This document shows positions 864-59,565 of a DNA stretch of 64,000 nucleotides, piece after piece. Position numbers and translations under genes: made by a program. Position 1 is the stretch's first letter; each line of letters begins with the position of its first letter. Below the pieces are notes generated by a model, which was not told where the DNA came from, searched no databases, and saw only the letters and a list, made by a program, of their open reading frames with translations. Source of the DNA: Podarcis vaucheri (lineage: Eukaryota); NCBI GenBank assembly GCA_965113315.1, contig OZ220376.1. One strand, given 5' to 3'.

Positions 864-1664
864 GAGATGGTTTAGGATTACACACATGGTAGTACTGCAC
901 TTAAGAGATTCCTTTGCAACTTAGATACTTCCTTTGCCATATCCTCTAGAAGACTCTGTTCCCAAAGCTGTGCTAACTCCTTTTTATGATGGCTGGCTCC
1001 AACAAGTACACATGCAACTATGTTAATTTAAAGCTCCATTAGACACAATGGAGAAACTGATAGGTGCAAGGAGAAGCTACTTTCCCTAAATGGGGGAAAG
1101 GCTCACAAATCGATATGAAAATGTTCTTGTAAATTCTCATGGGTTTTCTGCAAACCTTGCAATGAAAACTGCAATCATCACATCTTGATTAAAGTAAGAT
1201 TGCTTCCACTGACCACGGTAGGGCAGGAAGAAAGATTCCAATGCACACAAAAAACCTAACCACAGAATTGCTATACGAAATGGGGGGACATTCCCATAGG
1301 AATCTGCTTGGCTGCCGTGAAAATAGGATGCTGGGTTAAGATGGGCCCCATGCCTGATCCAGCAGGGCTCTTCTGACCTTTTGCTTTTAACGGCATACAA
1401 ATTTTGCACCTCCCTCAAGATACTGACACAAAAGTAAAGACAAATTGTGATGTGACAATCCAAAGGTAGAGAAAGCACTACTTGAGGGAGGAAGAAGCCG
1501 GGTGATGAAGTGGTGAGCTAACAACCAGCAGACACGGGTTGGATTCTTATCTGCAACCAGTGGTGTACTGGGGCGCAGCTCAGGGGGCTTTTCCAGAGTG
1601 ATGATGGCATTTGCTGGAGGACCAGGGTAACTGATGGAGCCTCTTTGCTCCGACAAGTGACTGA

Positions 1665-1932
1665 GGGCTCATCCATGCTGTCATTTAACGTGGATAATAA
1701 GATTCCTGTAGCTCCATTAATTCTCCGTTGTCCATAGGACATTCTCCTCCAAATCAATGCCTTCCCACACTTTCCTCTCCCTCAGTCCAGATCTTTTCAT
1801 ACCAGCGATAATCCGAAAATGAGAATCCAGATTGAAAGTGTGGGAAGGCAGTGAATGTCATGTGGACAACTGATAATTAAAGGAGGTACAGGAAGCTTAC
1901 TGTCCACATTAAATGACAGTATGGATGAGCCC
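1665..1932. mobile_element. Palindromic MITE, PIF/Harbinger-like
   Basis: ~110-bp imperfect inverted arms starting GGGCTCATCCAT...ATGGATGAGCCC, flanked by a 3-bp TGA duplication. Confidence 0.65.
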
Positions 1933-4317: not shown

Positions 4318-4520
4318 CAGTGGTACCTTGGAAGTCAAACAGAATCCATTCCGGAAGTCCGTTTGACTTCCAAAACGTTTGAGAACCAAGGTGCGGCTTC
4401 CGATTAGCTGCAGGAAGCTCCTGCAGCCAATCGGAAGCTGTGGAAGTCACTTCCGGTTTTTGATTGTCTGGAAGCCAAAATGTTTGACTCCCAAGGTTTT
4501 TGAAAACCAAGGTACGGCTG
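4318..4520. mobile_element. Tc1/mariner(pogo/Tigger)-type MITE
   Basis: TIRs CAGTGGTACCTTGG / CCAAGGTACGGCTG with TA on both sides; internally palindromic. Confidence 0.75.
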
Positions 4521-4770
4521 TATGATGATAATGTATTTATTTATACCTCATCTGCTTCCCTGGCAGGGACTCAAGTTAGCTTACAAATAAAAATAAGAAC
4601 AGCCAAAACATAGGGGGGACCATCATTAAAAAACAATTAAACATTGATAAAAGTAAAACTATATCTAGATGTACATAAACATCATACAAATAATTACAAT
4701 AAAAATAGCATGGCACCAGCCCTGTAATTAAAAAGCTCACAATATTATTGTATGTTATTCTATTATTATA

Positions 4771-4840
4771 AAACGAGATGACGTCTGCAAGCCCAGTCAT
4801 CTGCGACTGTACCTAATGGTCAGGGGTACCTTTACCTTTA
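4771..4840 (+). mobile_element. 5'-truncated Sauria SINE 3' end
   Basis: Ends GGGGTACCTTTACCTTT like the full copy at 40.3-40.6 kb. Perfect 14-bp TSD ATTCTATTATTATA (4757-4770, 4841-4854). Confidence 0.75.
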
Positions 4841-7800: not shown

Positions 7801-10800
7801 CAATTCTCACTGGCAGATGATGATGATGATTCTTCTTTGGACTATGTTAAAGTGCATTAAAAACACCACCACCAGTGTATTGTTTTGATGCTACAGCCTG
7901 GGGCTCTTTATCTGAATTTTATCACAGTGTTCTCAGAAAATGATCAAAGCAGCCATGACAACTTAATGTTCTTTTAACTTAAGTATAGCTGCATAACTTC
8001 CCCTCTGGTCTTTTGGCCTTTGGCTCAATATGCCATTGGAAACATCAAAGGTCAGGAGACTCAAATCCTCCAACCCAGAATAAAGACACAATGAGGGGTA
8101 AAGTTAATGTCTGAGGAGGAGATTAAACTATTTACAATGAGCTACAGGAAAGTTCAGTGTTCTTTTATGAAAAAGCAGTTCATTACTACTTGAAAAACAT
8201 ATTAGCTGATAGAACAACTACTTATCAAGGTAGGAATAAGCCCTACTTTCAAGGTAAACAAATAAAATAAGAGATATTCACTTTATTCTGGAACTAGCAA
8301 TAATATCTTCTTCAAGTTTAGATTTGGCATGCATTAACACAGATTTATGTATCTACATTATATTTTTATTTATTAAAATAGGGAATACACTAGAGGAGAC
8401 AATGGGAATAAGACTTATCAGAACAACTTCCCTCAAGGCACTCTTCCTTTTGCACATAAACTCTGTAAGTGAAGAACTTGAATCCTAATCCTAAACCCAT
8501 TAATAAATCACATTAGTTGATTACATAACCAATGTTGAATTAAGTTCCCACATGGAAACAGAAACAAATTAAATTGCTTTTCTTTTGTATATAATTTCTA
8601 CCATACATACTGAAGCTAGGCGATTCTACATGTGAAACAAAAGCAAAGAAAAATGGTAAAGCATAATTTAAACAGTGTATCTGAATGTGCTTTCATATCC
8701 ATCACAACACACACACACAAACCCCTTTCTATGAACAAAAGAATGGAACACTAAGCTATTTCAGACTTTATAGCGACAAAAAAGTCTGCAGCTAGTGTAT
8801 AGTGGCATTACAGGTTTTACTACGCACTACAAAATACAACATGACATTAACAAAAGGGGTTTTCAAAAGCAAGATTTAACATGGTGCCACAAGTTGTATC
8901 AGGCAAAGAGTTTACAGCACAGTTCCATAAACAGATGACTTCTGAAACACCGGGTAGCTCAGGGTTTTGACAGAAAATGGTCTTCTGTTTCTATTGTAAA
9001 AAACCTAGAAGATTTAATAGCATTTTCTATAGGCTATGCAAATCATTTTAATTCTGCAATCTAGGCACATTTGTTAGTGCTTGCCCTAAGTGTACGTGAG
9101 CTCAAAATCTAAAACCAAAAGGAATTACACAACAGGTTTACACACTTTCCATTCAAAGACTCATTGACCACACCAGAAATTATTGAACAGGGTAAAGGGA
9201 GGGGGAAGCAGATAGATAATTCTCTTACATCATATCCCCTACATCATATCCAAACGGCATTGCAGATCATTTATTAACCCTTCTTTCCTCCAAGGAGATG
9301 AAGGCAGCATACATGGTTATTCCTCTTTCTCAGTTTTATCCTAACAACCCAGTCATGGCTAAGTGGGGATTTACTCTCACTGGCAAATCTGCTAAAAAGA
9401 AGATCGGTGGTACAATCATAACACATGTTGTTATTATTATTAAACAAATGTCATTATTAAACTGTTTCTTTGTAACATCTTTATAAACAAAATATACTGA
9501 ACTACAACATAAACCAAGATCAATGCACTGGATGCATCGATTTCAGAAATCTCTTAAATCAGTGAAAAAAACAGAACAAAATGTAGGGGGAAATATGTGC
9601 TAGAAACTATGCCAATCTGTGTTTTGCATACTGTCAAAACTGTCAACTAGCTCAACATGGTAATCAAAGTGCATAATGTTCTCTATCAGCAAGCTAAGAA
9701 AGCGTTCCCATTCCATCCCGATTTCTGTGGTAGTTCAAGACAAATAGCATAGAAGCATCCTTTTTCCTTTCGAGTGTTTTCCTGGCTGCAATAATCTATA
9801 AAAAAATAATGTACTAATTAGATACAGCCCTTTGAAAGCAAGTACTCATGTTTAAAGCAACCTACTTTGCTTAGACTACAGCATTGCTTTAAACGTTGCC
9901 AAGGGGCTGGCAAGAGTTAAATGCTCATGTAACAATGTTCTCCTCAAACCCCCACAGGTCCATTCACTTAACACCATACTCCTGGAAGTGTGCCTGACAT
10001 ACCAAACCCCGTCCTGTTGCACATATTTTTATGCCTATTACTAAATTAGGAAAGCGGGGGGAACTGTGCCTGTGCCAATTGTGAAACAGAAAGGGTCAGC
10101 ATCATTGGTCTGCAGCAGGATCAGACAATTTGGTGCTCTCCAGATGTTGCCAGACCACAGCTCCTGTCTTCCCTGACCATTGGGCCATGCTGGCTGGAGT
10201 TGAAGAGGGCTGAAGTCCAACAACATCTGGAGGGTACCATGCTGGCTACCCCTGGGTTTACAGCTTCTCTGTTAAGCCAAAATCCTTCCAAGGCTGGCAC
10301 ATATAATCTTTATTGGTGCATGCAGCTGCACTGAAATACAATGGCACACACAGAAGAAGAAAATTAAAGGCTGTAATCAAGATTTCTCACTCCCAGGAAT
10401 ATTCTGCAGCGCACTACCGAAACCACATATTAGAATTACAGATTACTGTATAATTTAACTACCCAACGATAGAACTGGAATATAAAATTGTTATGTTGGA
10501 CATTTTGAAAAGCAAATGTAAAATGTATTAGTTTAGCCAAGAAAAGGGGCAAGGATTTTAAGTACTACTTCTTCATGACAACATTGCTGCCATAGTTAAC
10601 ACTTAGCTCTCTTGAGAAATACTAAGTGGGGCATTGAGGAATTTTTGAACAGGAAAAAAAACAGCAACTGGGAAGCATTTTAGAGGGATCTTCATCTGCA
10701 TGAATACTAAACACATATGTTGTATTTCTTGGCAACCAAGGAGGAAAGTTCTGATGGGGATGGGGGAAAGAAGGGAATAGAACTTTTCAGCCCCAGCACA

Positions 10801-12754
10801 TAGGTGAATCCCAACTACCAATGCAAATTGCTAAGCAAAACAGATTTTGACATAATGAATGATCATTCCCAGGTTATATTATAAATGCTCACAGTGATGA
10901 ACATGTAGTTTTAACATGCTTTGCAAGATTAATGGTACAAGGAAGGATAAAATTAGATGCAATAAAAAACTACAGGATTCTATATTTAGAAGTGGTATCC
11001 TCTGATTCTTAGGTCTATAAAATACACTGTTCTGAAAAAAAGATTCACCTACTCCTTTAGATAACTGGATAGGTATTTTAAAATGGAAAAAAAGTTTCAC
11101 CTTTATGACTACACTCAACATAGAAGCTGACTACAGGAAGCCTGTAAGACAATTAAGTTTGGGTTGAAGGCAAAGTATAAGTCTAAGACACAGTGTAGGA
11201 TGTGCAGAGTAAAGTTTTGAATAATGTCATGCATTTTGTTTAAGGAGAGCAAAAGCTTCTACCTTCTCCTTCCAGTCATTTCTGAGAGGAGTTCATGAGC
11301 CTGGGAGGTGGCTATGCTTGTTCACATCACACTAAACCATGGTATTTAGTACTAGGTTCAGTCTGTCCACACCCTGTTTGAAAGCCTGCACGTGTAGGAA
11401 AGGACACCCAAGAAAGGTTTGTGACCCCTTTTGCCCCACGGCATGTAAAATGTGCTTTTCAAAGTTACGCACAAACTAGCTCTTTGCAGGCATAAAGACC
11501 TTGGGGGTACAATCATGGGCAGCTCATCTCAAGTTCCCTGTACTTAATTATAACCAACTGGGCTAAAGGCATTTACTCTGAAGTAGCCTAGCTAAATTCT
11601 GGAGTATGTTGCTTCAGGACTGCTTTCAAAGTCCTATTTTCTTAAGGCAGTAATACAAATAGTATTTGAAAGGCAACTTTACCACAGAATGGCTTGGGAG
11701 TTTAAGTCATTGCCAACTCTGCTTAATTAATTCACTTACCATAAAAGTTGGCAAAACATGAAGCTTTTCACTTAGTAAATCTATAATTAACTGTTAATGT
11801 TTGCTGAGTAAACATAAGCCTATATTTAATTAAATCTTACAGTAAGATGCTATAACCTGAAAGTTTTATAAGCAACATGCTTCTGAAACAAAAACTTAAG
11901 AACTTCCAAATCTTGTTAGACATTAAAAAATTAACTTAACTTTATTGTGCTTATAAATAAAACCAGTATATGTTAATAAGACCTAGTTGTCAGAACATTC
12001 TTTCAAAGATATGAGATAAAGAAAGCATAAAGCTTTTTTCACTTCTAACAAAATCTAATCTTGACAGGAGCATTGTCTGAAGCAATGGAGTATTAAGACA
12101 TGAATGTAGAGTTATGTCTGAAGTTGCCATGTCTTTCCTACATTTCAACATCTGTAGTAATTAACGTGAGAGTCAGAATGGAATAATACCTATACACAAA
12201 GGCCCCACTGTTGGAATGCTCATTATCCAAAATCTCAGTTATCCAAACACAAAGAATTATACCCAAACCTTGCCACAGACAACTGGTTCAGATATCCAAA
12301 CAGCTGGAGTTTGCATACGTCTTTGTTTGTGTTTTGTTGGTTGGCAGCAGCCATTTTGGGCAGAAACAATGGAGGGAGGGAGGGAGATTGGACAAATCAA
12401 TTTTTCCTTTGTTTAGCTTTTTCACAGGAAGCATGCACAGGTCACTAACAAAGTTGTATAAGAATCTTAAGCAGCAACCTAACCAAAGATTAAATAGATC
12501 AGCTAATGACAATTACTCATGTCTTAGGCTCCAAGATCAGCAGGGCAAAGTTAGCAGGACTATACAGCTGAAGGCCTGTTTTATGTTGCCAAAGGATGCC
12601 CAAATTCTCTGAGGTTGCTGCATCACTCATCAGTTTCATAATGTAGAGGAGTAACATGCAGTTATTCTACTGAGGGCAATGAACATAACGCACATCAAAA
12701 CCTAAGTAAGATACAGTACACTCAAGTTGGGATAGAATAAAAACTCAATTTCTC

Positions 12755-13131
12755 GTTCTAACGAGTGATGAACGTCTGATGAAGATGATGGACTACACCA
12801 AAATGACGAAAATTGACTGGGAAAATCAGAAACCAGGAAAAGAGAAGGAATGGGGAAAATTTATAATGTATTTAAGAGAACACTGTAAACAACTAAAAAC
12901 TTTGGCAGGATTTGAGTAATGCTTGTAATGTATGAAAAACTATGTAAAAAAGGGTTATTTTTCTTTAAAAATTAGAGAAAAGAAGGGAAGCAGTTGGGGA
13001 AAAGATTGATAATAGTAACCATGGAAGCGCGGAGGGAAGTCAATGGATTCGGGGAATCCTAAATGATGTGGATGATTTGTTTGAATTAAAATTTGTTATG
13101 TAAAACTTATTAAAAACTTATTTTAAAAAAC
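12755..13131 (+). mobile_element. 5'-truncated L1-clade LINE 3' end
   Basis: Degraded ORF2-like C-terminus (MKMMDY...KEWGKFIMYLREHCKQLKTLAGFE*), A-rich tail, near-TSD AACTC(A/T)ATTTCTC at 12742-12754 and 13132-13144. Confidence 0.6.
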
Positions 13132-15765: not shown

Positions 15766-17380
15766 CAGAGAGCATCCCTGGCAACACCAACTTAAGAGCG
15801 CTCTGTGCTTAACATGGCATCTCACTTAGCAGGAGGCTATTTTAAAAGCAGCTACAACCATTTCACAAAATCAGCATTCTTGCTGATGGAAATGTAGCTA
15901 ACACTGGAGTAAGCTTCATCTTACTAATGCTGTAGGAATACTGTACTTTGTAAGCCCACTGCAAACCCCTTGCTAGAATAGAGCGAATAGAACTTATCAA
16001 GCTATTTAGAAAAGCTGTCACAATACCAACCATCCCACTCATGATCTTGATAAAGAGAAGCTACTTAAGAGGGATTATGAGCCAAAATACTCACAGGCTT
16101 TGCAACCATGAAAGGAAACCTGTTTGAAAAGTGCTTGCAAAGTAATGACAGAAAGAAAGCACTCAATGAAAACAGATCAGCAGAGTCAATTTCCTAGCAG
16201 AAATGGAAGATTATCACAGGCTGGGCAAGATTAATACACACTGTGCAAATGAAAAACTGACAGCATTTGGGGAAAATAAAGAGCTGGTTAGAGGTCCTTA
16301 GACAAGCTGACTCTGCACCAGCACTTCAATATACACTGGACCTTTAGCTAGACTCTGATGGTTACTAACTAGTGATATATTTAGCTATTTAAGAAGTATT
16401 CACATGCCTAAAGATTTGAACACACCGGAGGAAGACGTTTAATGTCCCATTTTCATATAAATAGAGGAAATAAATGCCGCTTCCTTGTACGGTAAAGACT
16501 ATTTCCTAAGCAACATGCAGTCAATCATTCCATAATGTAAATTATTCTTTCTGAAGTTCTCCTTTTTTGAATCTGTTAAAGTCATGTGTTAAGTTCTGGA
16601 AAAATACTCCCGCTCTTCTTTGAACAAACCTTACTTTTATAGTGTGCGTGCACAGCATAAATTTTACAAGTTCAAGAATATTCAGACATTCTCTTTGGAA
16701 ATTGGTATTTCTGAAACAATGATAATTTTTAGCAGTTTTCAGTAAAAAAATGTTCCGGATTTATGGAATGTTCACAATATGATACAATTTGAATCATTGC
16801 CACCACACATTTGGCTCCCTGTTTCAGTGAAGAGTTAACGTAGTCAACTCTGTTTCTGCACTTAATACAGTACAGGGCTGCAGCACCTTTATGAAGAATG
16901 CACAACTTACCCAAAACTTAAAAGTGTAGTCTTAAGCTCTCTTACTCTGCAGTAAGCCCCACTGAGACTCCATGCAAACATGCTTAAGACTATGCTGTTG
17001 TCTTGGTAAATTCTGTCCTTCATAAATTCCAGTTGAGGCAGCCTTCGTTCATTGTGACCAAATCTCCTCTGAAGTTCCCATTTTAAAATACAGTTAATTT
17101 ACCAGATAATAAGAAGTTTGCTGCAGTACAGAATAAAGGCTTGGCACGCTCAAAGATTATTGTGATGGATATTCCGCCTTCAGCAAACTCACTGTGTTTT
17201 CCCTAAAACAATCATTTAATTTTAACCCCATATTCATCTCATAGGTAGAAAGCAATGAATTAAGTTATTGCTTATAATGTAAACAACCAGTATGTCAATA
17301 CCTAACAGGCTTAACCAACATGCCTTAATCTACAAGCAGAATTGAAAATGCACGCAGCAAATCATCAACAGAAGCAATCA

Positions 17381-17719
<339 letters not shown>

Positions 17720-29179: not shown

Positions 29180-30110
29180 TGCTACAAGCCGCCTCGACAT
29201 TTCCCGATAAGAAGCGAATAAATAATAATAATAATAATATTTTTTCGAGGGGCGGGGGGACTGAGGGAGAAAACACACTAATGAGAATGAAGGGGAGCCT
29301 GGAAGGAAGGAAAGGGAGTTTATGTCCTAAATGCGGTTTAATCACCGTCAAAGAGAGACCGTTGTTGGGGGACGGGGATGGGTGGCTAGGTGGGAAGAAA
29401 GCGCATAATTCCCCCTCACACGTCTCCATGGCAACAACGTCTTTGTCCCGACAGCGGGAGGCAGAGAAGGGAGAAGCAAAAGCCGCCTCTTCTCCACTCC
29501 TCACTTCGCTGGATATGCCGCTGGGAAAGGGAGGGCAGCGAGGGGGCGTCGCAACTCACCTGCGTTTCTAAGCTGAGGGGGGCCCAAAATAGGAAGCGCC
29601 CTCACTCAGCACAACACGGGGAGAGAAGGGGCGGGGCAGATGGGGGGGGAAAGACACCAACTAACATCAACATCCGGTTAACGAACGGGAGGAGCGGGGG
29701 AAAGAAGAGTGGGTGGGGGGAGAACGCTGATTGGAAGCTGGAAGGGGCGGGCTCAGAAAGTCGCGCGAGAGCTTACTCGCGCGGCTCTTCCGCTCCGTGT
29801 CTTAATGAATAAATCGGGCGGCGCTCTTGAATCGGGCACGGGCGAGAGACGGGCGCATGCGTGGCCTTGTCTTCTCCTTCTCCATAGCTTGCCCTGCTCG
29901 CATTGTCCCTGAGCGCTTCCCGCCTTTTTTGAGAGAGTGAGGGCGCGTGCGTGCGGGGCCACGCCCATAACCGCTCTTTTCCCTCAGCAAGCGCGGCCTC
30001 CAGTTTCTCTTGAGGGGAAGACTTGGCTATGGATAAACGGTACGCCATGAAATCACATCCCTGCTGCCCCTTCGCTAGTTAGTTTAGGGTTGCTGGGAAT
30101 TGTAGCCCAG
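29180..30110. promoter_or_regulatory. CpG-island promoter of LRRC28 (ancestral LRRC28/TTC23 bidirectional promoter)
   Basis: Sharp GC/CpG rise against an AT-rich background. Motifs: X-box GTCTCCATGGCAAC 29422-29435, CCAAT (ctgattgg) 29727-29734, GC box 29744-29753, TCGCGCGAGA 29761-29770, ETS-like CTTCCG, NRF1-like GCGCATGCGT 29853-29862, ZNF143-like (rev GCTACAATTCCCAGCA) 30091-30106. Confidence 0.85.
29560..29700 (-). other. LRRC28: Putative non-coding exon 1 of LRRC28 (5' end approximate)
   Basis: Consensus donor GCAG|gtgagt at 29560/29559 inside the CpG island, upstream of exon 2. The TSS is not determinable from sequence. Confidence 0.55.
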
Positions 30111-31177
30111 ATTTTTCGGATAGGTCCCTCCCATATGCTTTAAAATTTCAAACTCCGCAAATAACAGATGTATGGTGTGTATGCAAGCCTCTGGTGTGTT
30201 GCCACTGTGGGAGATTTTCCCTTCTTTTCCTCACCTGTTTTAAGGTCCTTGTTTTTCACGGCTGGACTTTCAATATATATATTCGGGGTGGGGATGGAAA
30301 TTGACCAACAATTAAAGGAAAATTTAAGAGGAAAATCCTCTGAAAAACTAAAAATATTTTTGCTGATACATTTCTGCCAGTTCTTGCTTAAGCAAGGAAG
30401 ATCTGCACCTCTGACTTGAATAAGGAACTGGAAACAGCGAATAAGGAACTCGAACAACAATTTCCCTAAAATTTGACAAGTCTTTCTTTCAAGACAAGTC
30501 TGGGATTCATTATGTTAAACATAAGATAAATGTATACAATGAATAATATTTTAAGCCAGAAGGTTGTCAGTTGCACCCTGAATTCCCTTTCATTCTCATC
30601 TGTTCTTCAGAATAGAGTACCTAGTACCTAGGTTGCTGAAATGTGAAATTAAGATTTTCCTTATTGTTTTTATATCATCATAGCCCCACAGGACTGCCTC
30701 ACCACCCACTCTCAATTAGCTGCCCACAGGAGTGTTACACTGGATTTATTGTGCTTTATATACACTCACATAAACTACATATAAGGTTGAGTAGCGGGAA
30801 ATTTGATCTTGCAAGTACCAAGTGGATGACGAGTTATTTCTGTTTGGTTTAGTACCTGGAGTGAAGCCATAATGCAACTTCATGCTAAGCATGCCATCAT
30901 CTTCCCCAGTCTCTCTGTTTATTCTTAAGAACCAGGAGAACTGGGGCAGCTTAAACCTTCTCATTGAGAATTGTAGAGTTGAAAAGGACCATAAGGGTCA
31001 TCTAGTCCAACCCCCTGCAATGAAGGAATCTTTTACCTAACATGGGGCTGAAACCCACGACCCTGAGTTTTAAGAGTTTCATGCTCTAACACCTGAACTG
31101 TTTTCATATTTATCTGGGTCCTCGTAACAATCAACATCTGCAATAAAATTTAATCATTTTAAATAATGAAACTAATA

Positions 31178-31928: not shown

Positions 31929-31967
<39 letters not shown>
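31929..31967. repeat. (GT)n microsatellite
   Basis: Direct reading. Confidence 0.9.
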
Positions 31968-31968
<1 letters not shown>

Positions 31969-32478
31969 TCTCCCTTCCATCTCAAGACAAATTGTATATC
32001 AATAAAGTAGAATGGCTCAAAACCCCAGAACAATTGCTTGAAATTTATTCTTTGAGCTAGAAATAAAGTACCCAGTTCCTTTTTTCTTATGCATTTTTGT
32101 ACAGTAACATGTAATACTGTAGTTTTACATTTGGATAGAAGCCCTATATAACAGAAGAGCAAGTGCCTCTTTATTTTAACTTAATACAGTAATGCCTAGA
32201 TTATCTTGTTAATTTTTTTTTGTTGACGCAGGAGTGCTTAACTGAGCGTTAAGAACAGTGAACTGTCAATGTTGTTTACACTGACCAGTTTTAAAGTCAC
32301 TTTCTGTGTTTTGAACAGTACTCTACACTGAAGAGCAGATGGCGCTGTTGCATATCTATTGTCCAACATCCAATTTGAAGAGGTAGAACACCATAGTTAT
32401 ATATATATATATAGTGTATAATGGACTAGGTGGCGTAACTAGATGTAATTGGGGTTGTGTGTGTGTGTTCATCAGGAG

Positions 32479-32799: not shown

Positions 32800-35700
32800 A
32801 TCAAGAGTCATAGAGGCTCCTGAATTTGGTTGAGATTATAATGCTAGGAAATTCTCCCACAATTGCTACTTGCCCTATGGAGGGAAACATATAGATGTTG
32901 TATGGATGCCTGTCCATGGAAGACACTGGTTAGATCAGGGGCAGCTTCAAGCCCTGACTGTCCTTTAAAAGCAGGCCAGTTATACACAGTATGAAAAGTG
33001 AGTGATAAGATTTCCAAAGAGGAATATGCCTGGCCTCTTGGTGGCATATAATGTGGCATATAAGCTTCTACCTGGATTTCTCCAACTACTGTACACTGCT
33101 TCTGATTTTTCCACAATTCCAAAGTTCTCAAAGAAGTACTGTACATTTGAAAACTTACTCATAAATAAGAATATTTTAAACAATGCCCATTTCATACAAA
33201 CTCACGACAGAGACAGTTGAAAAACAGGAAATTGGAGTTCAGTTTTCTGTGTTATGCATGTACATAGTTACACTTTTAAAATAGGGTGTCAAAACTGTGC
33301 TCCAGTTCAGGCCTTTCCTGAGAACAAACCCCATGGATTTGATTGAATACTGTACTGTGAATAAACTTGCATAGGACGGCACTGCAAGTGTGTGCTTCCA
33401 GCTACACTTGTGTTGTGGTATGAAAATAATCCAAGCTTGGCATGCCTGAAAGGACAACCACTGTCAAACTTTATACTAACACTTCTCCCCAGTACAAAAA
33501 AAGTATCCAAGACATTTCCATTTTGTTTACAGCATTTACATAAATGATATTCAGTTGGAATCTCTTGGGGAGCAAAGTGTACTTCAGTATAAACCTTTAA
33601 AGGCCAAAATGTAAAAAAGAAGGTGGAGACTGGCAGCCTTGTTAGGAATTGTTTCGCTCTCTGCAGGCCACCGCTGAACCATTTCAAGGTTGTGTGCTTT
33701 TTAAAGTATGCAGATGTCTGCATGTCACACAACAGATATTGTAAAGACCTTTATTTAGCTACCTTTCCTGCCACAGTCAGCAGCAACTACAACAGCGCTT
33801 TAAGGAAAAACAATATTTTAAAAGTGTTCTTCAGAACGGTCTCCTGTAGCTACAATAATTACCCAGTCCAGGTGTGATTTTCAGCAGTAGTCTTCAACCT
33901 TAATTAATCCCAATCGTGTGACATAGGACCCAGTTTATTTTCTGCTTATGTCCATTTTTCTCCTTTTATGTCTGATGTAAGGGACAACTGCATATTCCTG
34001 CATTTGGAGATGATTCTCAGGGTCCCTTCTAACTCAATGATTCTATGATATCCAGATGCAAAGGAGGACAACAGAGTGCCCCACATTGCGTAGGGGCAGC
34101 TTCCCATACAGAGGGAGAAAAGATGAACCTTCCAATATCCAATTTGCCACAAATCTGAAATACATATGCTACTTTGCAATGCTACACTTCCATGTTGTTG
34201 TTTTAAGCTGTACAACAAAAAGAAAGTGGTGGTGATGCTAGCCAAGGTCAGAGAGTTACCCACTTGTGGATCCCGACCTACTATGAGTCTAAGAAAGAAC
34301 TTAGTTATGTTTAATAGAGGAGTGGATGTGAAGAGATGGACAAAATTTTTCATATGTAGTGGGAATGTGACGTGATAGTATGGTTCTGGTGAAAGTTTTA
34401 AAGGAATGTGAGACATTAATTGGACAAACTATAGCAAGATGCGCATTGAGATCTGCTGTCTATTTTTGATGGAAATAGATCATACAAAGAACAATTAATA
34501 TTTTAAGCATGTCTTCAGTTAGCAAGAAACTGAAAAAGCAGGGCTGCCATAGCTACTGAATTGTGGCATCAACAAATCTGCAATATAGCCTTATCAGGAA
34601 AACTGAACAAATATGGGCAATAAAAACTCAAACAGAGCCAAACACCTTTTTTGCAACATTGTAGGATTTTATTTGACTTTATAAGTAAACAAAAGTGATG
34701 ATTAGATTCATTCCCCATCCATACATGGAAATCTCTGGAGGAATACTTTGGGATAATTCTTGTTTTATTTTGCTTTGAACTTACGTTCTCCAACACAGCA
34801 GTGTGACAATGTGCTCCTACATTTACTGTGTCTGTTATAGAAATAGATAGAAGTTTTTAAACAAACAAACCAAAAACTGTTGGATCTACCCCTCACCCAC
34901 CATTTCTAGTTTTCTAGTTCTTGTGAAGCAAAACACTTATATAAACTGCATTCTAATATTAGTTATCCACATAATGGTATAAAAATGAATAATTAACAAG
35001 TGGAGAAGCCCTCTCTGCTGAGGCACTTGCTATGGCTATATGAGGTCCCAGCTGTGAGAGCCATACTGGGAAAGAAATCTACCAGAAGCCCTGAAGAGCT
35101 AGATTGGAGATTCATTGAGCGGATTAGACTGTAAATTTGATTCAGTCCAACATAAATCCTTATATAACATCCCTGCATAGAATATATTAAAATGACAATT
35201 TCATTTTTAGTGGCCCCAATCCAAAAAAGTCACGTGCAAGAAAGTGTGATGTTCAAATAACTAAAGCCTGGCACAGCAGATGGAAAGGCTCATTCCTATT
35301 TACAATACAAAAGAGAATGGACAGTAAAGCACATGCAACATACATGCAGATTTGATGGTTCCTGGCTGTGCTTGTGCCATGGTAGCCAATGAAACATATA
35401 TGACTGTGGCACTACAGTCCTATTTTGAGGACTGGGCTGCCAGCTTGTTATTAAATGGGATACTCGGTGTACATGTACTTTTGGAAATGTGTTAATTGTC
35501 CTTGCTTGGATCTTTGTGGTGCTAAATTAACCTGGGACCTTTAGAGAAGCTCTGGGACAACAGGTGCAAGTTCCTTAAATGAAATGGCCCCAAGGACAAG
35601 GTCCAAACATAGTACTTATTTCACACCAATCCGCAAACTAAAGATAATAACTATCTTGTTTAATCAGCAATTTATTTATTTAAATAATTTTTATCCCTCC

Positions 35701-36240
35701 TCTCATAAAAAGCTCAAGGCAACATTAAACAGCGGACTGCAGATTCAAAGAGATCCTGGTGAACTGCTGCCATCCCTGTTTCTGCATACTTGCTGTAGGA
35801 GTGGAATACCAAGTTCCAGTATTGCATAGGGTGTCGAACTTCAGAATGAGTAAATCTAGGCTGAAATCTCCACTTGGTAAGTTACTGGGTCTAGGACACC
35901 CAAGCTTGTTGGGTGTTCTAGACCCAGTAACTCTCAGCTTAACCTGCTTCACAGAGTTGTGTCAATTAGGGGTGTGTCATTTAGGTTATCCTGAGCTCTT
36001 TGAAGAAACAGAAAGGTAAACATGTAATAAGTAATGATAGTATATCATAGTGTTGCACAGTTGGCTGAGTTGTGAGCCTGAATCTTGATTAATTTCAGGA
36101 TGAATACTGGCTGTTCTCTAAGAAAGAATCACTTCCACTCCTCTGCTTAAAAACAAATCTGGACTATTTTCAATGGCTTAAACAGCTGGCACTTTCAGAC
36201 CTCTGCTTTTAACTTTTTGGATCCTGTTCTCTTCTTTTGG

Positions 36241-36390
36241 ACACTGCTCTCTGTATAAATGCTGATGGAGTCACTGGCCACAAAAACATTGTTGTTTAAG
36301 GACTTCAGCCCTGAAGAGGCAGAGACATACTGGCTCCAGGCTGAGGGACAGAGATCTGACAGAGAGGTGCATAGTTAGCATTTAATATAT
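36241..36390 (+). pseudogene. TTC23: Decayed exon of TTC23 (tetratricopeptide repeat domain 23) pseudogene
   Basis: 36262-36336 reads LMESLATKTLLFKDFSPEEAETYWL vs recalled human TTC23 LRESLEAKVEAFGDFSPEVAETYRL (16/25 identical, ungapped). Correct strand and syntenic position. Pyrimidine tract ends in GG rather than AG at 36239-36240; in-frame TAA 36256-36258 and TAG 36376-36378; donor gtaag at 36391. Confidence 0.8.
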
Positions 36391-39300
36391 GTAAGACATT
36401 AACATGCTCAATTTGCTTAACAACAGAGCTGGCACAGGAACATTTTGCATATAGGTAAGTTACACCTTAATAGAGATTGCTTTGTTGAGCTGAAACAGTT
36501 TTGTAAAATGATATGAGTGAATAATTTAACAGAGCTGCAGAACTGAACTGTGGAATGCTATTGAACTCCCAAGGTTATACAAATTATAATATTTAAGCAC
36601 ACTGTTACTGAAATTCCCCTCATTTAAAATAGGACATTCTCCGATTGCTTCCAGATGAACTGTTTATTAAGCAGGTATCTTGATTTGTTTACACAAAGGG
36701 TTTTCTTTTTTTGGTGGGGCAACTATTTACTGAGTATTCACTCTTATTTGTTTACAGTTCTTATGACACACTTTCTAGGGCATTCCCCCTCACTTTCCTT
36801 ATTGCAAAGAGCCTAGGGTTGCAGAAAAGTGGGTTTGTTGTGCAGGAGTTACAAATCAAATTTAATGACACTACCTGAATTTGCTGGTGACTGAATGCCA
36901 CTCAGAAATAGCAACAGCCTGGACACTCCCTTTACACCAGCTGCTTTATTTACTTATGTAAACAACTAGCTAGTTTAGTTGGTTGCATCTCATCCCAAAT
37001 CTTGTCCCTGATTAGGAAATTAGTTCTGGATTTCTTCAAGTGAAAGTTAATAGTCCTTCGCAATAAGTGTTTGATCAATCCATCAACCTCTGGTGGATGA
37101 TTTAGAAGGATTGGTTCTGGCATCACTTTCACTGTGCATTTTGTGCCAGTATCCATACTCAGCAGAGTTACATCTCAACGCAGCTCCTTCCTTGGAATTG
37201 TCTTCGGGGTTGAAGGTACACACAGTAGGCAATAAACACTCATGGACGCCATAAAGATTCAGTCAAGTGTAGAGGTTTACTTGACAGGCATAAAAGCATA
37301 TTGGTAGCAAATATATACAGACATTCACCACTGCCGTGGTCAAGGCATGCTTAGAGTCCAACAAGGGTCCAAGCCTCTCTCTCTGCTCTCACCGCAAGAT
37401 GCAAGCCAGAGACTCACAACAAATTACACAAGTTACACAGAACCATTGTTATCAGTACTTCCTGTCACATTGTACATGTCCATAGAACAGTTCCCACAGA
37501 AAACATCCTTGCATAGACAAAACAGTCTCAGCCTGCTGCTGCTTCTTGAAACTTCTCTGTTCTTCTCTGTTTCTGAAACAAATGATTCTCTCACACAGAG
37601 AATATCCAAGAAGAAAAACTGACATCAACCAAAGCACTCTTCATCTTTGTTCACCCAAACATAATGGATGTCCTTGGACTTAATTGTTTCCCCACTATTC
37701 CTCCCCTGCTGAAGGACATACCTATTTACATCTACCTATGCCAAAATCCAATACACCTGTTGTTTCTTTGTGGTGGTGGTTGTGTTCAGTTATCAGCTTC
37801 TTCACTAATTCATGGAGATGCTCCAAGGTCACATTCTATTTATTTGTTTGGTGCACCCACAGGTTGGTAGGTAGGGATGGGGAATAAATTCAATTTAGTT
37901 CACATTCAAAGACAAATCTGGTAATTTGCACTTTCCAAAACAAAATGAGACCCAAAATTCATCCATACTCAAAATTAGCACTTCTCTGAGCTTTGCAATG
38001 CAGTTTTTCAGCCAAGTAATATGTACAAAAATGCACAGACTAGGATAAAATGTACATAAAAAAGCAAATGTTAATGAATATAATATACAAAAGTGCAGTA
38101 TGTTTAGGGAGATTGCTTTATAAAGATGCCTATCAGGAGAAATTTGCACTAAAATGCTTATGAATTTTCATGAGGACTTTTCTTTTTTAATGCAAACGTG
38201 TGGAAATGTGGAGAACTGAACGTAAAACTAGAAAATTGAGAAACTGAAATTGACAGATTCATCCATCACTGTTGGTAGAACACACAAGCAGCTGTTCTTA
38301 GGTTTTCTTTTCATCTATTAAGTAAAAAAAAAAAACACCACTTAAATTTTGGGATGAGAAAGTGCACAGCAAACACTCAAAAAGGAACTTCGGTGCTTCA
38401 GTGGAAAACGAGGGCAAGCTAGAACTGGAACAAGAGACCCAGTCAGCTGTATCCTTATTTGGTCCTCTCATCTTTTATGCTGTCATTCCAAACAACAGAG
38501 CTGACAACTAACAAAAGGATATTTACTTGGTTAGTCTTCTGCCTTATTTGAATTTAAATGAAGTTACATATTACGATAACTTCTATAAAGGTGCCTTCTT
38601 GAGATACTGTATCTTTAGCCATGTGATGCCGTAGCAGTACTGAAGATGAGCAGATCTGGATTTGGCCAGAGCCTGGATGCGAGGCCTCCTGGGAACCCTG
38701 CATACTCTGCTGCAAGCTTCATGGAGAAATGTCACAACTGAAGCTTGGGGTGTGTGTGTGTGTGTACTGCACTAAACACTGGTATTTGTCAGGAAACTAC
38801 AGGATTGATCTGGATTATGGCTAATGTGTGAATGTGTCTTAAAAAATTAGCAGTGGGAGTGCACTGGATGCAGAATAAGCAGTAATGTGAACATACCCTG
38901 AGCTACAGTGGTGCAGGGCAGGAGGATGTAATTGCCTTGAGGTTTTCTGAATATTTAGCTTTACAACTATTAGTTACTGCGTTCCTTTCTAAACCTTGTG
39001 ACAAAAGAGAGTGTGAAGCTCACAAGGCAGTTTGCCCAAAGCAGAGTAAACTCTCTTGCCCATGAAGCCTTTTAAAGTATTACAGCTGTCCCTGGAACTC
39101 CTTGTCAAAGTTTGTTGTTCTGCAGCTAGCATGCCTATTTTTATATTCCCCTCCTGGGCTCACATCCTGAAATCTCTGCAACATGCTGAAGTCTATGGGG
39201 ATTATTAGTGGCATATGTATTTTCAGGGTAAGAACTCCCATGGACATGGAATAGGAGAATTCTGATAAACTTTCAGATAAGTCATTCTGATTTTTCAAAC

Positions 39301-40265
39301 TATATACCCCCCTCCAGTTTCCTTTCTATTACTTTGTTTAAAAGAAATTGGAGGGAGAGGGAAAGGAATTGGTTTATCATGTCATTTTATGACCTAACAT
39401 TAGGGTTATGCTGCCCCAACCAAATTTTGGTTGATTAGAGTGCTGATTAAAAGTCCAGAATTATTGGTTAATTCTTTCTTAGTGGAAGCCAAGGATAGTA
39501 AGAAATCTTATGTTTCCAAATAAGAGACACCCATCAGAACTTGGGGAAGCACTTTCTCCCCACCACCACCCTGCCTCTTAGAGAGAGAGCGCTAAGAAAA
39601 GTAGCTGTGTGTATGTGTGTGAGAGAGAAATTTCTGAAGCATTTTTGCCAGAAAAAGGCAAACAGCAAGGTTGTGGACTGGTTGAAAGCACCCTTGAGGG
39701 TGCAAGCGCTCTCTGGATAACTGATAGAGCAGGTGTCACCAAAGTTGCACCTGTAGGCACAACAGTGCATTTGAGATTCCCCCCAGCTGCCCACAAAGCC
39801 GCAGCCCACAAAACTGGAAGGAAGAGACCAGAGGGAGTGGCACCCACGGTACTTACTTAAAAATCCAAATGTGCCCACAGGTCTAAAGAGGTTGGTGAGC
39901 CCAAGACATAGAAAATTTGCTGCCTTGTAGAGGTGCTTCTTTGTTCTAAAAAGAACTCTGATGGATCAGACCAAAGTTAGTCCAGCAGCATCTTTCCAAT
40001 AATGGCCAGCCAGGTGCCTCCAGGAAATACACCAGCAGGCCTTGAAAGCAACAGCCCCCTGTTGCTCCCCAATGGCAGGAAGGGCAAGGTGTACTACCTC
40101 TGAATCTGGAGGTTCTTTATAGATTCCCATGACATATATACAGGCATTGATAGATAAAACTTGGGGCCATCACCCCAGTCTTATGGCAGCAAGTTCCACA
40201 AATTATTATTTATACAAGTGTACTTATATACTAACGTAAAATATATACTTATATATGTACTTATA

Positions 40266-40647
40266 GGGAGTGGGTGGCGCTGTGGTCTAAACCACTGAGC
40301 CTCTTGGGCTTGTTGATCAGAAGGTCGGTGGTTCAAATCCCCACAACGGGGTGAGTTCCCACTGCTTTGTCCCAGCTTCTGCCAACCTAACAGTTTGAAA
40401 GCACATCTGTGCAAGTAGATAAATAGGTACCACTGCAGCAGGAAGGTAAACAGTATTTCTGTGCTCTCTGGCTTCCATCACGGTGTTCTGTTGCACCAGA
40501 AGCGGTTTAGTCATGCTGGCCACATGACCCAGAAAGCTGTCTGTGGACAAATGCCAGCTCCATCAGCCTGAAACAAGATGAGCGCCGCATCTCATAGTTG
40601 CCTTTCACTGAACTTAACCATCTGGGGTCCTTTACCTTTTTACCTTT
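40266..40647 (+). mobile_element. Full-length Sauria SINE (Squam1-type)
   Basis: tRNA-like head GGGTGGCGCTGTGGTCTAAACC...GGTTCAAATCC, body GTGCAAGTAGATAAATAGGTACC, tail (ACCTTT)n. Confidence 0.9.
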
Positions 40648-48022: not shown

Positions 48023-48408
48023 TACCAGCACCAAATGTAGCTGCTCGCTCTTTCTTTCTTTTAGTGCTGAAGTATTATAGCACCCTTATCATTATGACAT
48101 AGCTTATAGCAACTGGATACAAGGCGTTTTAGCACAAGCTAATGGTGAGTGTGCTAAACTTTGCAACATCACAGCCCCATTTCAGCAAACAGTTGTGCAG
48201 GGACTCACTTTAAACAGGGTGGCCACTTTTTATTGATCCTGTTCCTGTGAATTTAAGAGCAGCCTGAAAAAAAGTCACTTAGGAGGTGAAGATTCTCCCC
48301 CTGCATTGTAACTCCATTTCTGTGAAAATGCTTAAAAGTGAGAGCCTTAATCCTAATCAAACTTGCATCGCTAGTAAAATATGCCCACCGTTTTAGAGGT
48401 GGTGGTTG

Positions 48409-48410
<2 letters not shown>

Positions 48411-48448
<38 letters not shown>
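48411..48448. repeat. (GT)n microsatellite in the probable SYNM 3'UTR
   Basis: Direct reading. Confidence 0.9.
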
Positions 48449-48452
<4 letters not shown>

Positions 48453-49233: not shown

Positions 49234-52200
49234 TCAGAACCAAGGTCCATCGTCTTCTTCTTCCTCCTCCTCCTTCTCATTCAGATAAAGAACAGCCGTT
49301 TTCTTCTCATCAGAAATCACCGATCTTTGGTCTACCATCCTTTGAAGTTGAACAGTCTGATCAAATGTTGACTCCTCTAATCTTTGTTCACTATCTGTGT
49401 CCTTCTGATCATCTTTCATGGTGCCCTCCAGCTGTGAGGCAGCTGCTTTTTTCCTGTTCGGTACGAGAATGGTAGCATCTTGCCTTCCCCCTTCCACATT
49501 GGTTACATCCATCTGAAAGGTAAAAGACTTTTCCTTGGGTCCTATCTTTATATGCCCAACAGATTTGCTGCTTTCTGAGGGCCCATCTGTTGGGGATAGT
49601 TCTGCAGTGCCGACCCTCACTGTTTCAGAAATAGGGCCATGAAATATAATCTGTTCAGCGTGAGTTTCAGCTGGGCTGAGTCTGATGTGCCTCATTGATC
49701 TACTGACCTCCATGGAACCTCCTTCTTCCCAAATGTCTTCCCCAGGAGAACTGATCCCTGAAGATTCTGAAAGAGAGCCTTGGTAAACAACACGCTCACT
49801 GCTCAGAACTTCCTTCTGCCCCAATTTAATGTGTGTTACTAACCCTTCAGAAGAAAATGCCTGTCCCATTTCACTAAACTCTAGGTGCTGTTCGGAAGTG
49901 GGCACCTTAAAAACAATTTCCTCAGTTGTTACAAATGGTTTTGGACTTAATTTGATGTGCCGAACAGTGGTATTGGTATCTACCATCCCCTCCTTGAAAT
50001 GTTTGTCTGGAGAGCCACCAAATTCAGTTGCTTTGAGAAGAGATTCATCATATATAGTTTGGTCAGATATATGGGTGTCTTTTTGCCCTAGACGAATATG
50101 TCTCACTGTCTGTTCAGTCACAGTATGGCCTCCAGTGCTACTAAGCTCCACAAATCCTGAAAGGGGCTCTTCATATACAACTTGTTCAGTGTGTACTTGT
50201 TTGGGATCTATCCGAATGCGCCTTATCAAACTGCTGCTTTCTACTGGCCCTTTTGTCTGAGAAACAGCCTCACTGCTGCTGTTTGATGATAAGTCTGAAG
50301 CTGGCGCCTCAAAAACAGTTTCTTCAATAATTTGATTTGAACCCAAAGTAACGTGCTTAGAGGACCTAATTTCAGTAGAAAACTGCTCCTGCGTAGGACT
50401 TTCAGGGCCACTCATTTCCATGGTTTTATGAACAGGCCCTCTATAAATTATTTTTTCTGTGGTCTGAATTTCTTTAGGGCCAAGATTGAATTCTTTTGTG
50501 GACTGACTGATATCTGCAGATGCTTCAGTCTGAAAGCCACCTGAACCAAACTCCAGAGTTTCAGAAATAGGGCCTTCATATAAAACCTGCTCAGTTCTGT
50601 GAATTTCTGTTGGACCAACTACAATTTGCTGAAAATGTCTGTTAACGTCAAATGACCCTTGTGAAGAATATTCTCCTCCTCTATTAATTTCCATACTTTT
50701 GAAAACAGGGACCTGGTGGATAACTTGCTCGTTTGTATGATATTCCCTGGCATCACTGCTGCTTAGTTTGCTAGAGCTAGAAACCTCTTCTATAGTCCAA
50801 GGTGTGGAAGAAACATCTATGTCAACATTCTTTCTACCACCACTGTAGCTTTCTGACTCTTGCTTCCGGCGGTCATCAAAATCATCATCGCTTGGTAACT
50901 GTGTTGGCAACTTCATCTTGCCCAAAAGTTCTGCATTTAACTGGTCAGGGTTGAGCACCTGGGACAGATTGACTTCTGCGACTATTGTAACCAACCCCCC
51001 CTTTTTTGTGTCCTCCGTTTTTTTAATATCCACTTCTAGACTGCTAGCATCAGCTTGGCCCTCTTCTGTTAATGCAGAAAGCTCCTGTTTCACACTTTCT
51101 GGAAGGGTGTGATCAAGCTTTTCTAGTGCCTCTTTCAACTGAAGCTTTGGGTCCTTTGACTCCTGAGAAAAGAGATCCTTTATGGACTCCTGAAATTTTT
51201 GCGGGATTTTAATCTCTTTCTCAATAACAATGGATTCGGCATGAGCCACTTGCTCCTTTGGAACCTCCTCCTTTGAAATGTAGGCAGCTGTCCCTCCCCC
51301 CATCACTTGGTAAATCAGTTCTGGGGAGCCCATACCTTCATTTATCTTTGTTTGAGATCCCTGCAAGAATTGATCTTGCCAGGAATACTTAACTGTTGAT
51401 TCTTCTTCGATATGGATTTGACCATATAATGAGGCTTCTTCTTCACTCAAGGGGCGCTCCTCTGGAGTAGACACAAAATACTTTTCTTCATCAACTACAT
51501 CATCCCCCTCAGATACTTCTTCCACATGAGACACGATCACACTAGGTTGCTTCTGCTTAACATCTTTGATAGTACTTGTGGTAGCTCTATCTTCATCCCC
51601 ATGGTATAGATGCCTGGCCATATCAGGCAATGTATCTTCTACTTCCTCTACTTCAAACGGTGTTGAAAACTCCATTTCAGCTGTAGATTCCATTGGCTCC
51701 TCAACTATTTCAACTTTAACAGTCCTCTTGCCTTTGCCCCCCTTTCCTTTCACAAGATCTTCTATTACACCTTCATCTGGAATTCCCTTAATGTCTCCCA
51801 GAACTTTTTTAACATTTTTCTCTAAGGAAGATCCCAGGTCAAACTCATCAGAAATGTGCAATTCATCTTGAACTGTAGACTGTATATTGATCTCAGTCTT
51901 CACTTTTCCATTCTCTGAAATGTCTTTCTTTTCAATGGAGATGACTTTGAAATCAGAGGAATCTCCACCATCAGAAGGTTTCTGCACGAACCCTTTAAGA
52001 ATGTCAGAAACAATGGATTCTGCTATACTTTCTTGAAGTAAGGTGTCTATTTTGGAGCTCCCTTTTTCATCTTGGTTAGATTCTTTGACAAGTTTAAATG
52101 TGGTGTCATCCATCTGTTTCTCAACAGAAGGCTTCAAGTCTTGTAATGTTCTTTCTACGCTATTGTCTTTTAGTACTTGGCTGTGAGTATACACTTCTGA

Positions 52201-53156
52201 CGGGATAGGGATCTCAGCAGCTTCTTTACTTTGTGTTGCCATGCTCACATTTTTCTCCCTTTGAAATGAATGGCTTTCTTCCATCCTTGTATCTGTTGGA
52301 AGATTCTTCCCTGGTGTGTCCACTCTAATCCTTTCTTCCCATCTTACATAGCTTCCGGGCTTGGGTGCTTTATCTCCCAAAAGGCCGCTTCCCCTCATGT
52401 TATCCTTCATGGTAGATACTGTCTGCTTTTCTTCATTGATGCCTTCCTTAATTTCAGTCTTCTTTTCAAAGCTAACATTGATGGATTTCTTGTCGGTCTT
52501 CACAGTGGCAGAGTCTATCTTTTCCTTGGGCCATCTTTCGTTTCTCTCTCTTCCCTCCAGCAAAGCAGTTTTTTCCTCTTTCACTGGCTTGCTGTCTTTG
52601 ATCTGTTCACTCACTCTAGTCTGAGTTCCTTCTATGGTTCTCTCATATTTAGTTTCTTTAGAACTGGAACTTAGCCCAGAAGATGGAAAAATACCCACTT
52701 TCGCTCTTGCATTTTCAGAAATATTTGGACTTGTTGTGCCTTTCTGAATAGTTGTTGATTCTTTCAAAGACACAGTACTCCCAGCTTCAGTTTTCTGCCT
52801 TTCAGGAAACGTTCTTCGTTGAGCTTCTTTCCCCTGGCTAATAAGATAAGGTGGGGTAAATGTTCGGATCTCTCTCTGTTCTGTCATAGTTCTCTTGCGA
52901 GTTGTGTCCTTTGTGACGGCTGCAGAAGGGCGGTGTTCTGTCCTGAAGGCATCTCTTCTTAATGGTCTCCCAGGAGTCACTGTCTGCATTCCACCAGTTT
53001 TTGTTTGAGATGAATAAACTGCAGAGCTGCTAATATTTGTTACAGGGGATTTATATCTTGTGTCAACATTCTGGATTGCAGGAAAAGTTCTCCTTCCTTT
53101 CGCCTGTTGATAAGCTGAGTGGCGGTTGCTGTACTCATAAAGCTTGTTCCGGACAC
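49234..53156 (-). CDS. SYNM: Synemin giant last coding exon (tail domain, alpha/H-type, includes stop)
   Basis: Open for 3923 nt. Carries synemin tail motifs (FSTPFEVEEVED, LYGQIHIEEESTVKYSWQD, LKEALEKL, FTFQMDV, VQLQRMVDQRSVISDEKK...DDGPWF). Acceptor ggcag at 53158-53157, phase 1. Confidence 0.97.
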
Positions 53157-54245
53157 CTGCCGATAGATAAAACAAATGAAAATCATGGCTGTTAACATAG
53201 TATACTTAAGTAGTGTTCAAACACAGCCACACACAATTGGCAAAAATTTAATTACAGCATAGCATTAACACATCTAAGAAAAATGGGTGCTGCTTTGCAG
53301 TCAAACCATCCATTCCTGCTTATCTTTTCAAAACACAGATGACAAATGTGGACAACTGCATAATCCCAGGAGGTTTAATTTCTGTACAGTTCCTCACAAG
53401 GTCCCTACCGCATTGACCATCAAAGTAAATGAGATTTGCACCTGCAGAGCAACAAGCGATATTGGTGTGCAAACAGGATGAAATTCCATGAGAAACATTC
53501 CGTTCATAATTATTAACACCACTCAGCTAGGGAGCCCTAGTATTATGTGCTACTAATGGCTAATCCTAAACACACATTTCCAATTCTTTTCACAGTGGGC
53601 GCTAAAATCCATTAGGTAAAATCAGAGCTATGTGTATGCCACACTGATATTCTGTACACCTGCGAACCTTGGGGCTTCCAATGATGCCTCCCTCTTGGCC
53701 ATGGATAGTGCTATTTTGGCTAAGAACGTAAGAATAGTCCTGCTAGAGCAGAGTAGCAACCTATCCAGTCCAGCACTCCACTCTCACTGCGCCCACCCAA
53801 ACGGCCCTGGGGAACCTGCAAACATCACTCAAGGGCACTAGCGTTCTCTCTACCTGTGATTTCCAGCAACTGAGATTCAGAAGCATACTGCCTCCAACAT
53901 ACCGCCATTGATAGCCTTATCCTCCATGAATTAGTCTAATCCTCTTTTAAAGCCATTCAAGATGGTGGCCACCGTGCACTGCAGGGGATTTGATTAGATG
54001 ACCCTTAGGATCCCTTCCAACTCTACAATTCTATAATTGCTGCCTCTTTCAGAAGTGCATTCCACACAATACCTTTTATTATGTAACTTCTTTCACACCT
54101 TTTCTCTAAACTAAAAAGTCACCAATACCGTAACCCTTCTTCATAAGGGTTCCCCTTGGTCATTTTGGCATGGCATTTGTGCCTCAACATTAGAAATGGA
54201 GGGAATTGATGGTGATTTATAATTATTGATTCTACCTCCCCCTTA

Positions 54246-54641
54246 AAGAAGGCTGATCACCGAAGAATTGATGCTTTTGAATTATGGTGCTGGGGGAGAC
54301 TCTTGAGAGTCCCACGGACTGCAAGAAGATCAAACTTATCAATTATTAAGGAAATCAGCCCTGAGTGCTCACTGGAAGGACAGATCGTGAAGCTGAGGCT
54401 CCAGTACTTTGGCCACCTCATGAAAAGAGAAGACTCCCTGGAAAAGACCCTGAAGCTGGGAAAGATGGAGGGCACAAGGAGAAGGGGACGACAGAGGACA
54501 AGATGGTTGGACAGTGTTCTCGAAGTTACCAACATGAGTCTGATGAAACTGTGGGAGGCAGTGGAAGACAGGAGTGCCTGGCGTGCTCTGGTCCCTGGGG
54601 TCACGAAGAGTCGGACACGACTAAATGACTAAACAACAACA
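54246..54641 (+). mobile_element. RTE-BovB LINE 3' fragment
   Basis: Encodes ...RRIDAFELWCWGRLLRVPRTARRSNLSIIKEISPECSLEGQIVKLRLQYFGHLMKREDSLEKTLKLGKMEG...; (CAA)n tail; TSD ACCTC(C/G)CCCTTA at 54234-54245 and 54642-54653. Confidence 0.92.
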
Positions 54642-58500: not shown

Positions 58501-59440
58501 GGGCTGGCATCCTACTAGAAGATAAATTCAACTTCTGGAAAATTCTCTCTCATTAGAAAGGGCAGAAAAACTTCACACAAAATCCAGCATTCCAAAACTG
58601 ATTGGAAATACCAATCCTGACTGAAAACCTCATTATTTCATGTTCTTGTGACTTTTATTTTATTTTTTAAACCAAATAACATTATGTATAAAACAGGTGG
58701 GCATGTGGACAGCCTTTTAATCAATCCTGGGCAGAAATAGTTGAAATTGTATAGTATTTAACAGATTCATTTTCCTGTCTCACCTGGAGCGTCTTGTCCA
58801 AAAGCAAAGTCCATGACTGCTTGGGTTAGAACCCACAACATAAAATTGACTTGTTATTTCCAATCCACCATCTTCTTTTTCCCACTCCATCTTAAAGATC
58901 GTGACCAGATGCAGGCTCCATGGCTTCAACATCAAAGAACACACACACACCCTGCTGCCGACACCAAGTGTTCTATTTACTATCTAGCCCAATTAAGATT
59001 TCCAGAGAATTATACCAAGTCAATCCAAATAGACTGAATATGCTGAAATCTCTGCCTTATCTGGAGTAAGTTTGTTCCTACACTGCTCCTGAACTGGTTT
59101 GTCATCTCTAGTGATGTTAAATTCTCAAGAATAATCTTTCGGAGAATATTCTTGAGAATATTCTCTGGAGAACGTTCTCACCTCACATCACTAGTCATCT
59201 CCAAGTTAAGTATGTGTGTGCAAGCACACCCTACAGCAACAGATTTTACTACTCATCAACATTTTTTTGTTTTGCTTGTCTCTAAATTTCTCAGATGTTC
59301 CATTCAAGCAGAGACATTCAAACTTGCCCCAACTTTTTGCTTTATGTGAAATGAGGTTGAAACTGAACATGTCCACTGCAGCATAAGAGGAATTTCAAGT
59401 GTCTCTTAAGAGCACCATTGGTCACTTTTATGATCCTTAC

Positions 59441-59565
59441 CTGTAAGTTTCAATTTCAAGGCTGAGACCAGCTTTCACCTGCAAGAGTTCATGGTAGTCC
59501 TTTAGGTACTCTGCGATAGACATGGTTAGGAAATGCTTTTCTTCTTCCAAGGCTTCAATGATCAC
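59441..59565 (-). CDS. SYNM: Synemin exon 2 (coil 2B; not in ORF track)
   Basis: VIIEALEEEKHFLTMSIAEYLKDYHELLQVKAGLSLEIETY(R). Acceptor cgctttag, donor gtaagg; 125 nt. Confidence 0.95.

Follow-up and report, generated by a model that had tools for sequence, protein, structure and literature searches.

A candidate fossil exon of the ciliary gene TTC23 between an LRR gene and synemin in a lacertid lizard

Results

We analysed a 64,000-nt stretch of genomic DNA from the lizard Podarcis vaucheri (hereafter, the window), in which two minus-strand genes bound the interval of interest. One is synemin (SYNM), whose large tail exon is a 1313-codon ORF at 49234–53175 on the minus strand, 98% identical to the synemin of Podarcis muralis; in a protein search, about 20 squamate records matching this ORF carried the name synemin, and a rod-domain exon lies at 59437–59565 on the same strand. 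The other is an LRR gene, seen as two minus-strand ORFs that each hold one of its exons (17378–17716, Pfam LRR_4, 2.9e-8; and 25–297, Pfam LRR_8, 1.5e-7). The exon at 25–297 matched 20 vertebrate fragments at 73–98% identity, none of them bearing a gene name, and we infer from its position that the gene is LRRC28. A CpG island at about 29250–30250 (GC 0.54–0.62, CpG observed/expected 0.67–0.93) is presumed to be the promoter of this LRR gene; in mammals, the CpG island of the LRRC28 promoter is common to LRRC28 and the head-to-head gene TTC23. Human gene order in this region is PGPEP1L, SYNM, TTC23, LRRC28, HSP90B2P and MEF2A (PMC6238305, Table 1). Given this order, the minus-strand orientation of both SYNM and the LRR gene, and the CpG island, a TTC23 orthologue is expected on the plus strand at ~30–49 kb, where it would lie tail-to-tail with synemin.

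Within this interval, a candidate fossil exon of 150 nt (50 codons) lies at 36241–36390 on the plus strand, and thus at the place and on the strand expected for TTC23 (between SYNM and the LRR gene, opposite in strand to the LRR gene and convergent with SYNM). A reading of the sequence alone (the sequence-only reading) had placed TTC23 between SYNM and LRRC28, which agrees with the human order given in PMC6238305 and with the position of the candidate, the name LRRC28 being positional on the lizard side. The frame-1 translation of the candidate contains two in-frame stops, a TAA at 36256–36258 and a TAG at 36376–36378, which flank an open piece of 39 codons (36259–36375); the remaining two frames of 36241–36390 are also closed. 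Upstream, a pyrimidine tract (36223–36238) is followed by GG (36239–36240) at the expected site of a splice acceptor AG (together 36223–36240, plus strand), and a donor-like GTAAG follows at 36391–36395 on the same strand, so that splice-like signals exactly 150 nt apart frame the open core. The translation is identical to the one quoted in the sequence-only reading, which had reported both stops in a 50-codon plus-strand frame, and the GG-for-AG acceptor and the gtaag donor exactly 150 nt later are likewise present as described there. Two stops in 50 codons, together with a 39-codon open stretch, are the random expectation at 40% GC, so the open stretch alone does not amount to coding evidence, and whether 36241–36390 stands out from chance depends only on its similarity to TTC23.

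The lesions were compared with X3, a DNA run from a separate study under the same species label, in which a contig of 3877 nt covers 33500–37097 with 34 differences from the window. Among the differences listed, none falls within 36161–36484, a span that takes in both stops, the GG and the GTAAG, and X3 depth at the candidate exon is ~20, as for single-copy sequence. Assembly errors are therefore a very improbable source of the stops, the GG and the GTAAG. The sequence-only reading had asked for the stops to be confirmed in raw reads, and over this span the contig of the independent run speaks for the lesions.

Likeness to TTC23 is concentrated in a 26-codon core at 36259–36336 (plus strand). 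This core (MLMESLATKTLLFKDFSPEEAETYWL) is identical at 16 of 26 positions to a segment that we take to be residues ~336–361 of the 447-residue human TTC23 (ILRESLEAKVEAFGDFSPEVAETYRL), and the run DFSPE.AETY is presumably common to both. The counterpart exon of human TTC23 is, we assume, also 150 nt long. Scored by hand, the alignment of the core to the assumed human segment has a BLOSUM62 sum of 69, or ~31 bits with gapped and 34 bits with ungapped parameters, and a hand-derived E of ~3e-4 to 3e-3 when the assumed protein of 447 residues is compared with the 19-kb interval in its three plus-strand frames. As a scale for chance, the best match of the 39-residue piece to a six-frame translation of the window reached 19 bits (tblastn), which places the core ~12–15 bits above it by hand scores. 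The 24 codons outside the core, including the second half of the exon, are almost without likeness to the assumed human exon. The assumed human protein agrees at seven of seven positions with the residues named in a docking paper (E49, A52, K53, S56, N57, L68 and N92; PMC13181239), which makes it credible for the N-terminal residues 49–92 that these labels cover, the core segment lying outside them.

Pfam assigned the 39-residue piece to no family, TPR included, even at E values up to 10; the Pfam models may need more sequence than half a TPR pair provides. HMMER, run against 1.84 billion representative proteins, returned three matches, all internally repetitive and none of them TTC23 or a TPR protein; we rejected these as homologues, the proteins being unrelated and their scores inflated by summed repeats. 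This HMMER result is no evidence against homology, because the piece is too short for the search library. Nothing significant was returned for the piece from the PDB, nothing was found in the ESM Atlas, and a literature search with the assumed human peptide gave no match.

Two look-alikes illustrate what such searches can return. A degenerate-pattern scan of metagenome contigs for DFSPE.AETY hit only bacterial HypB-like genes and zero vertebrate host contigs; in contigs L001–L007, the motif sits inside a conserved block of HypB-like ORFs (GDDKPAKYPVMF...), and 12 of the 17 residues around it agree with the lizard piece. In the PDB, immunoglobulin (Ig) constant domains matched the piece at 13 of 25 residues (13–15 bits, pattern AT.T.L.K.FSP...WLQ). 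The HypB-like ORFs share DFSPE.AETY with the lizard piece but differ in fold and organism, and the Ig domains share AT.T.L.K.FSP...WLQ but have an unrelated fold; scores were non-significant in both cases. When the space searched is very large, short look-alikes of this kind do turn up by coincidence.

We also looked for further exons of TTC23 on the plus strand of 29.9–49.2 kb, where 140 stop-to-stop ORFs reach 38 residues or more. All of them were compared with Pfam, a scan of single ORFs that detects lone LRR exons at 1e-7 to 1e-8 and is insensitive to decayed exons. None of the 140 ORFs matched a TPR family, and the seven matches obtained (E values of 0.0016–0.044) are at the chance level for 140 trials. 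The earlier statement that no intact multi-exon gene was found at 30–48 kb agrees with this result for TPR-coding ORFs on the plus strand across 29.9–49.2 kb. A tblastn search of the window with the 39-residue piece, again insensitive to decayed exons, found no sister TPR unit, and inspection of the three frames by eye, a weak test, revealed no other convincing segment like the assumed human TTC23. A faint likeness to the C terminus of the assumed protein (LL.PQD...L.T) at 37344–37440 on the plus strand was dropped because X3 depth (about 1000 versus 20) marks this segment as a high-copy repeat, of ~50 copies.

RNA was examined in three sets from close relatives: X15 and X17, contig sets of two related species that we guess to be RNA, and X23, a run of unassembled stranded RNA reads from a related species. 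Over 34100–36700, depth was zero and no splice joints were seen in any of the three (relatives, tissues unspecified); in 33.5–36.7 kb as a whole, RNA was confined to a high-copy repeat at 33900–34099. The candidate exon is thus uncovered in all three sets, which suggests that it is not transcribed. In mammals, TTC23 expression is weak and tissue-restricted, so missing RNA proves little.

Discussion

The reading that we favour, with moderate confidence, is that 36241–36390 is a fossil exon of TTC23. The claim of the sequence-only reading to this effect stands as regards place, strand and lesions, and the absence of RNA cover is in line with it; the TPR character of the piece went unrecognised by Pfam. 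Under this interpretation, the segment would be the relic of one C-terminal, TPR-coding TTC23 exon, retained at its ancestral place and on its ancestral strand between the LRR gene and synemin of a lacertid genome. The exon itself would be dead (with GG at the acceptor, two in-frame stops and zero RNA cover), and the rest of TTC23 would have either drifted past recognition or been deleted. Inactivation would probably be old, because the 26-residue helix-loop core alone is still recognisable. Sequence, lesions, synteny and the lack of RNA in the three sets are observed; that the exon belonged to TTC23 (from likeness to the assumed human sequence), that the whole gene has died and that no working copy persists elsewhere are inferences.

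Unitary pseudogenes, such as GULO in primates, are single-copy genes that have decayed in place, with their flanks kept and their lesions fixed. The lizard locus resembles them in its kept flanks and fixed lesions but differs in that only one exon-sized relic is seen. Compared with human TTC23, the locus is alike in its neighbours and their relative orientation (SYNM-TTC23-LRRC28), in the core (16/26 against the assumed human residues, including DFSPE.AETY) and in presumed exon length; it differs in its two stops, the lost AG acceptor, the absence of RNA, the dissimilar second half of the exon and the lack of any other recognised exon.

An old pseudogene with one legible motif fits these observations, and a chance match fits them almost equally well, save for score and place. 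If the match were due to chance, the segment would be unique intergenic or intronic DNA that happens to resemble a TPR loop of TTC23, the gene itself having been cleanly deleted or lying elsewhere; we consider this, the main rival reading, unlikely, although by no means negligible. Homology support was not obtained from Pfam, ESM Atlas, HMMER or PDB searches, the recurrence of DFSPE.AETY and its surroundings in unrelated bacterial HypB-like ORFs (12/17 residues) and the Ig match (13/25 residues) show how far coincidence can reach, stops are as frequent as in random DNA, the remainder of the 'exon' is dissimilar, pyrimidine tracts and GTAAG are commonplace, and a second exon relic was not recognised; the human segment is, moreover, an assumed one, set down in knowledge of the sequence-only reading. 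However, a coincidence would have to produce a match to the very gene whose orthologue should occupy this position and orientation, with a hand score ~12–15 bits above the piece's best chance match in the window and with splice-like signals exactly 150 nt apart around the open core, and the assumed human protein from which the match was drawn passed its seven-label check over residues 49–92.

Retention of a working TTC23, either because the dead 150-nt exon is skipped with the frame kept or because a copy lies outside the window, appears improbable to us. A length of 150 nt is divisible by three, a compact TTC23 would fit into the 19.7 kb between the CpG island and synemin, expression of the gene may escape the RNA sets for the reason given above, and single TTC23 exons may go unseen by Pfam; yet none of the 140 plus-strand ORFs was found to be TPR-like, 33.5–36.7 kb is without RNA or splice joints in the three RNA sets apart from the repeat at 33900–34099, and no further segment resembling the assumed protein was seen (by eye, a weak test). 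That the stops and the GG reflect an assembly or sequencing artefact seems to us hardly credible, given that X3, from an independent study, is without a difference over 36161–36484 among the differences listed.

The TPR protein TTC23 belongs to the EvC zone of the cilium together with IQCE and EFCAB7; it is an accessory protein that aids Hedgehog signalling in mouse cells, and its knock-out in cells causes a moderate or mild Hedgehog defect (Breslow et al., bioRxiv 10.1101/156059), in agreement with the role at the EvC zone and in Hedgehog signalling that the sequence-only reading had ascribed to it. Losses of this kind have been catalogued across squamates, with 53 genes missing (Salve et al. 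2026, PMC13005343); the type of claim is the same as ours, an orthologue missing at a conserved syntenic place, but the main text of that paper mentions neither TTC23 nor LRRC28 nor SYNM. To the extent that the main text is representative of the study, a loss of TTC23, if real, would be either unreported or not squamate-wide. Among the matches listed in a literature search on TTC23, none linked the gene to evolution, gene loss or reptiles.

As it stands, the locus is an ordinary single-gene pseudogene candidate. If the loss is true, it would be the lineage-specific loss of an accessory gene of the Hedgehog pathway in a normal-limbed vertebrate and would offer a natural experiment on the extent to which the EvC zone relies on TTC23; such a loss would agree with the mild effect of the knock-out in cultured cells (Breslow et al., bioRxiv 10.1101/156059). 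We tentatively suggest, as a possibility that we rate below an even chance, that TTC23 has long been dead in lacertids, and perhaps in squamates more widely, with limb and skeletal patterning normal. These animals would then be natural knock-outs, and TTC23 would prove to be dispensable or to have had its role taken over by another gene, such as TTC23L.

Additional observations

Downstream of the candidate exon, unspliced continuous RNA extends from ~37.1–37.3 kb to beyond 39.5 kb in two relatives, with contigs that reach ~40.3 kb. The region covered by RNA contigs of the two related species is 36925–40300, probably extending further, on the minus strand; the RNA is probably minus-strand because the first mates in X23 all lie on the plus strand. 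A TTTATT at 36945 reads as AATAAA on the minus strand, and the RNA ends ~550 nt from the candidate exon. Its source may be synemin, through an exceptionally long 3' UTR or through read-through, or else a distinct non-coding transcript.

High-copy repeats occur at 33900–34099, 36900–37600 and 37900–38300, where summed X3 contig depth is 700–13000 (compared with ~20 in unique sequence). The repeat at 37900–38300 is SINE-like, with an A-rich tail near 38181, and interrupts the RNA contigs. At 40181–40550, minus-strand ORF translations resemble tRNA-derived SINEs, and the RNA contigs of both species end at about this point. Behind position 37726, X3 and the RNA contig sets of both relatives carry 12 extra bases, so the window has a 12-nt deletion relative to them. 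Microsatellites of (GT)n/(TG)n type, seen as CV/VC runs in translations, lie at 31950–32000 and 48400–48450, and within the synemin gene a 109-codon plus-strand ORF at 54303–54632 resembles, judged by its translation only, the C terminus of ORF2 from a LINE of RTE/BovB type.
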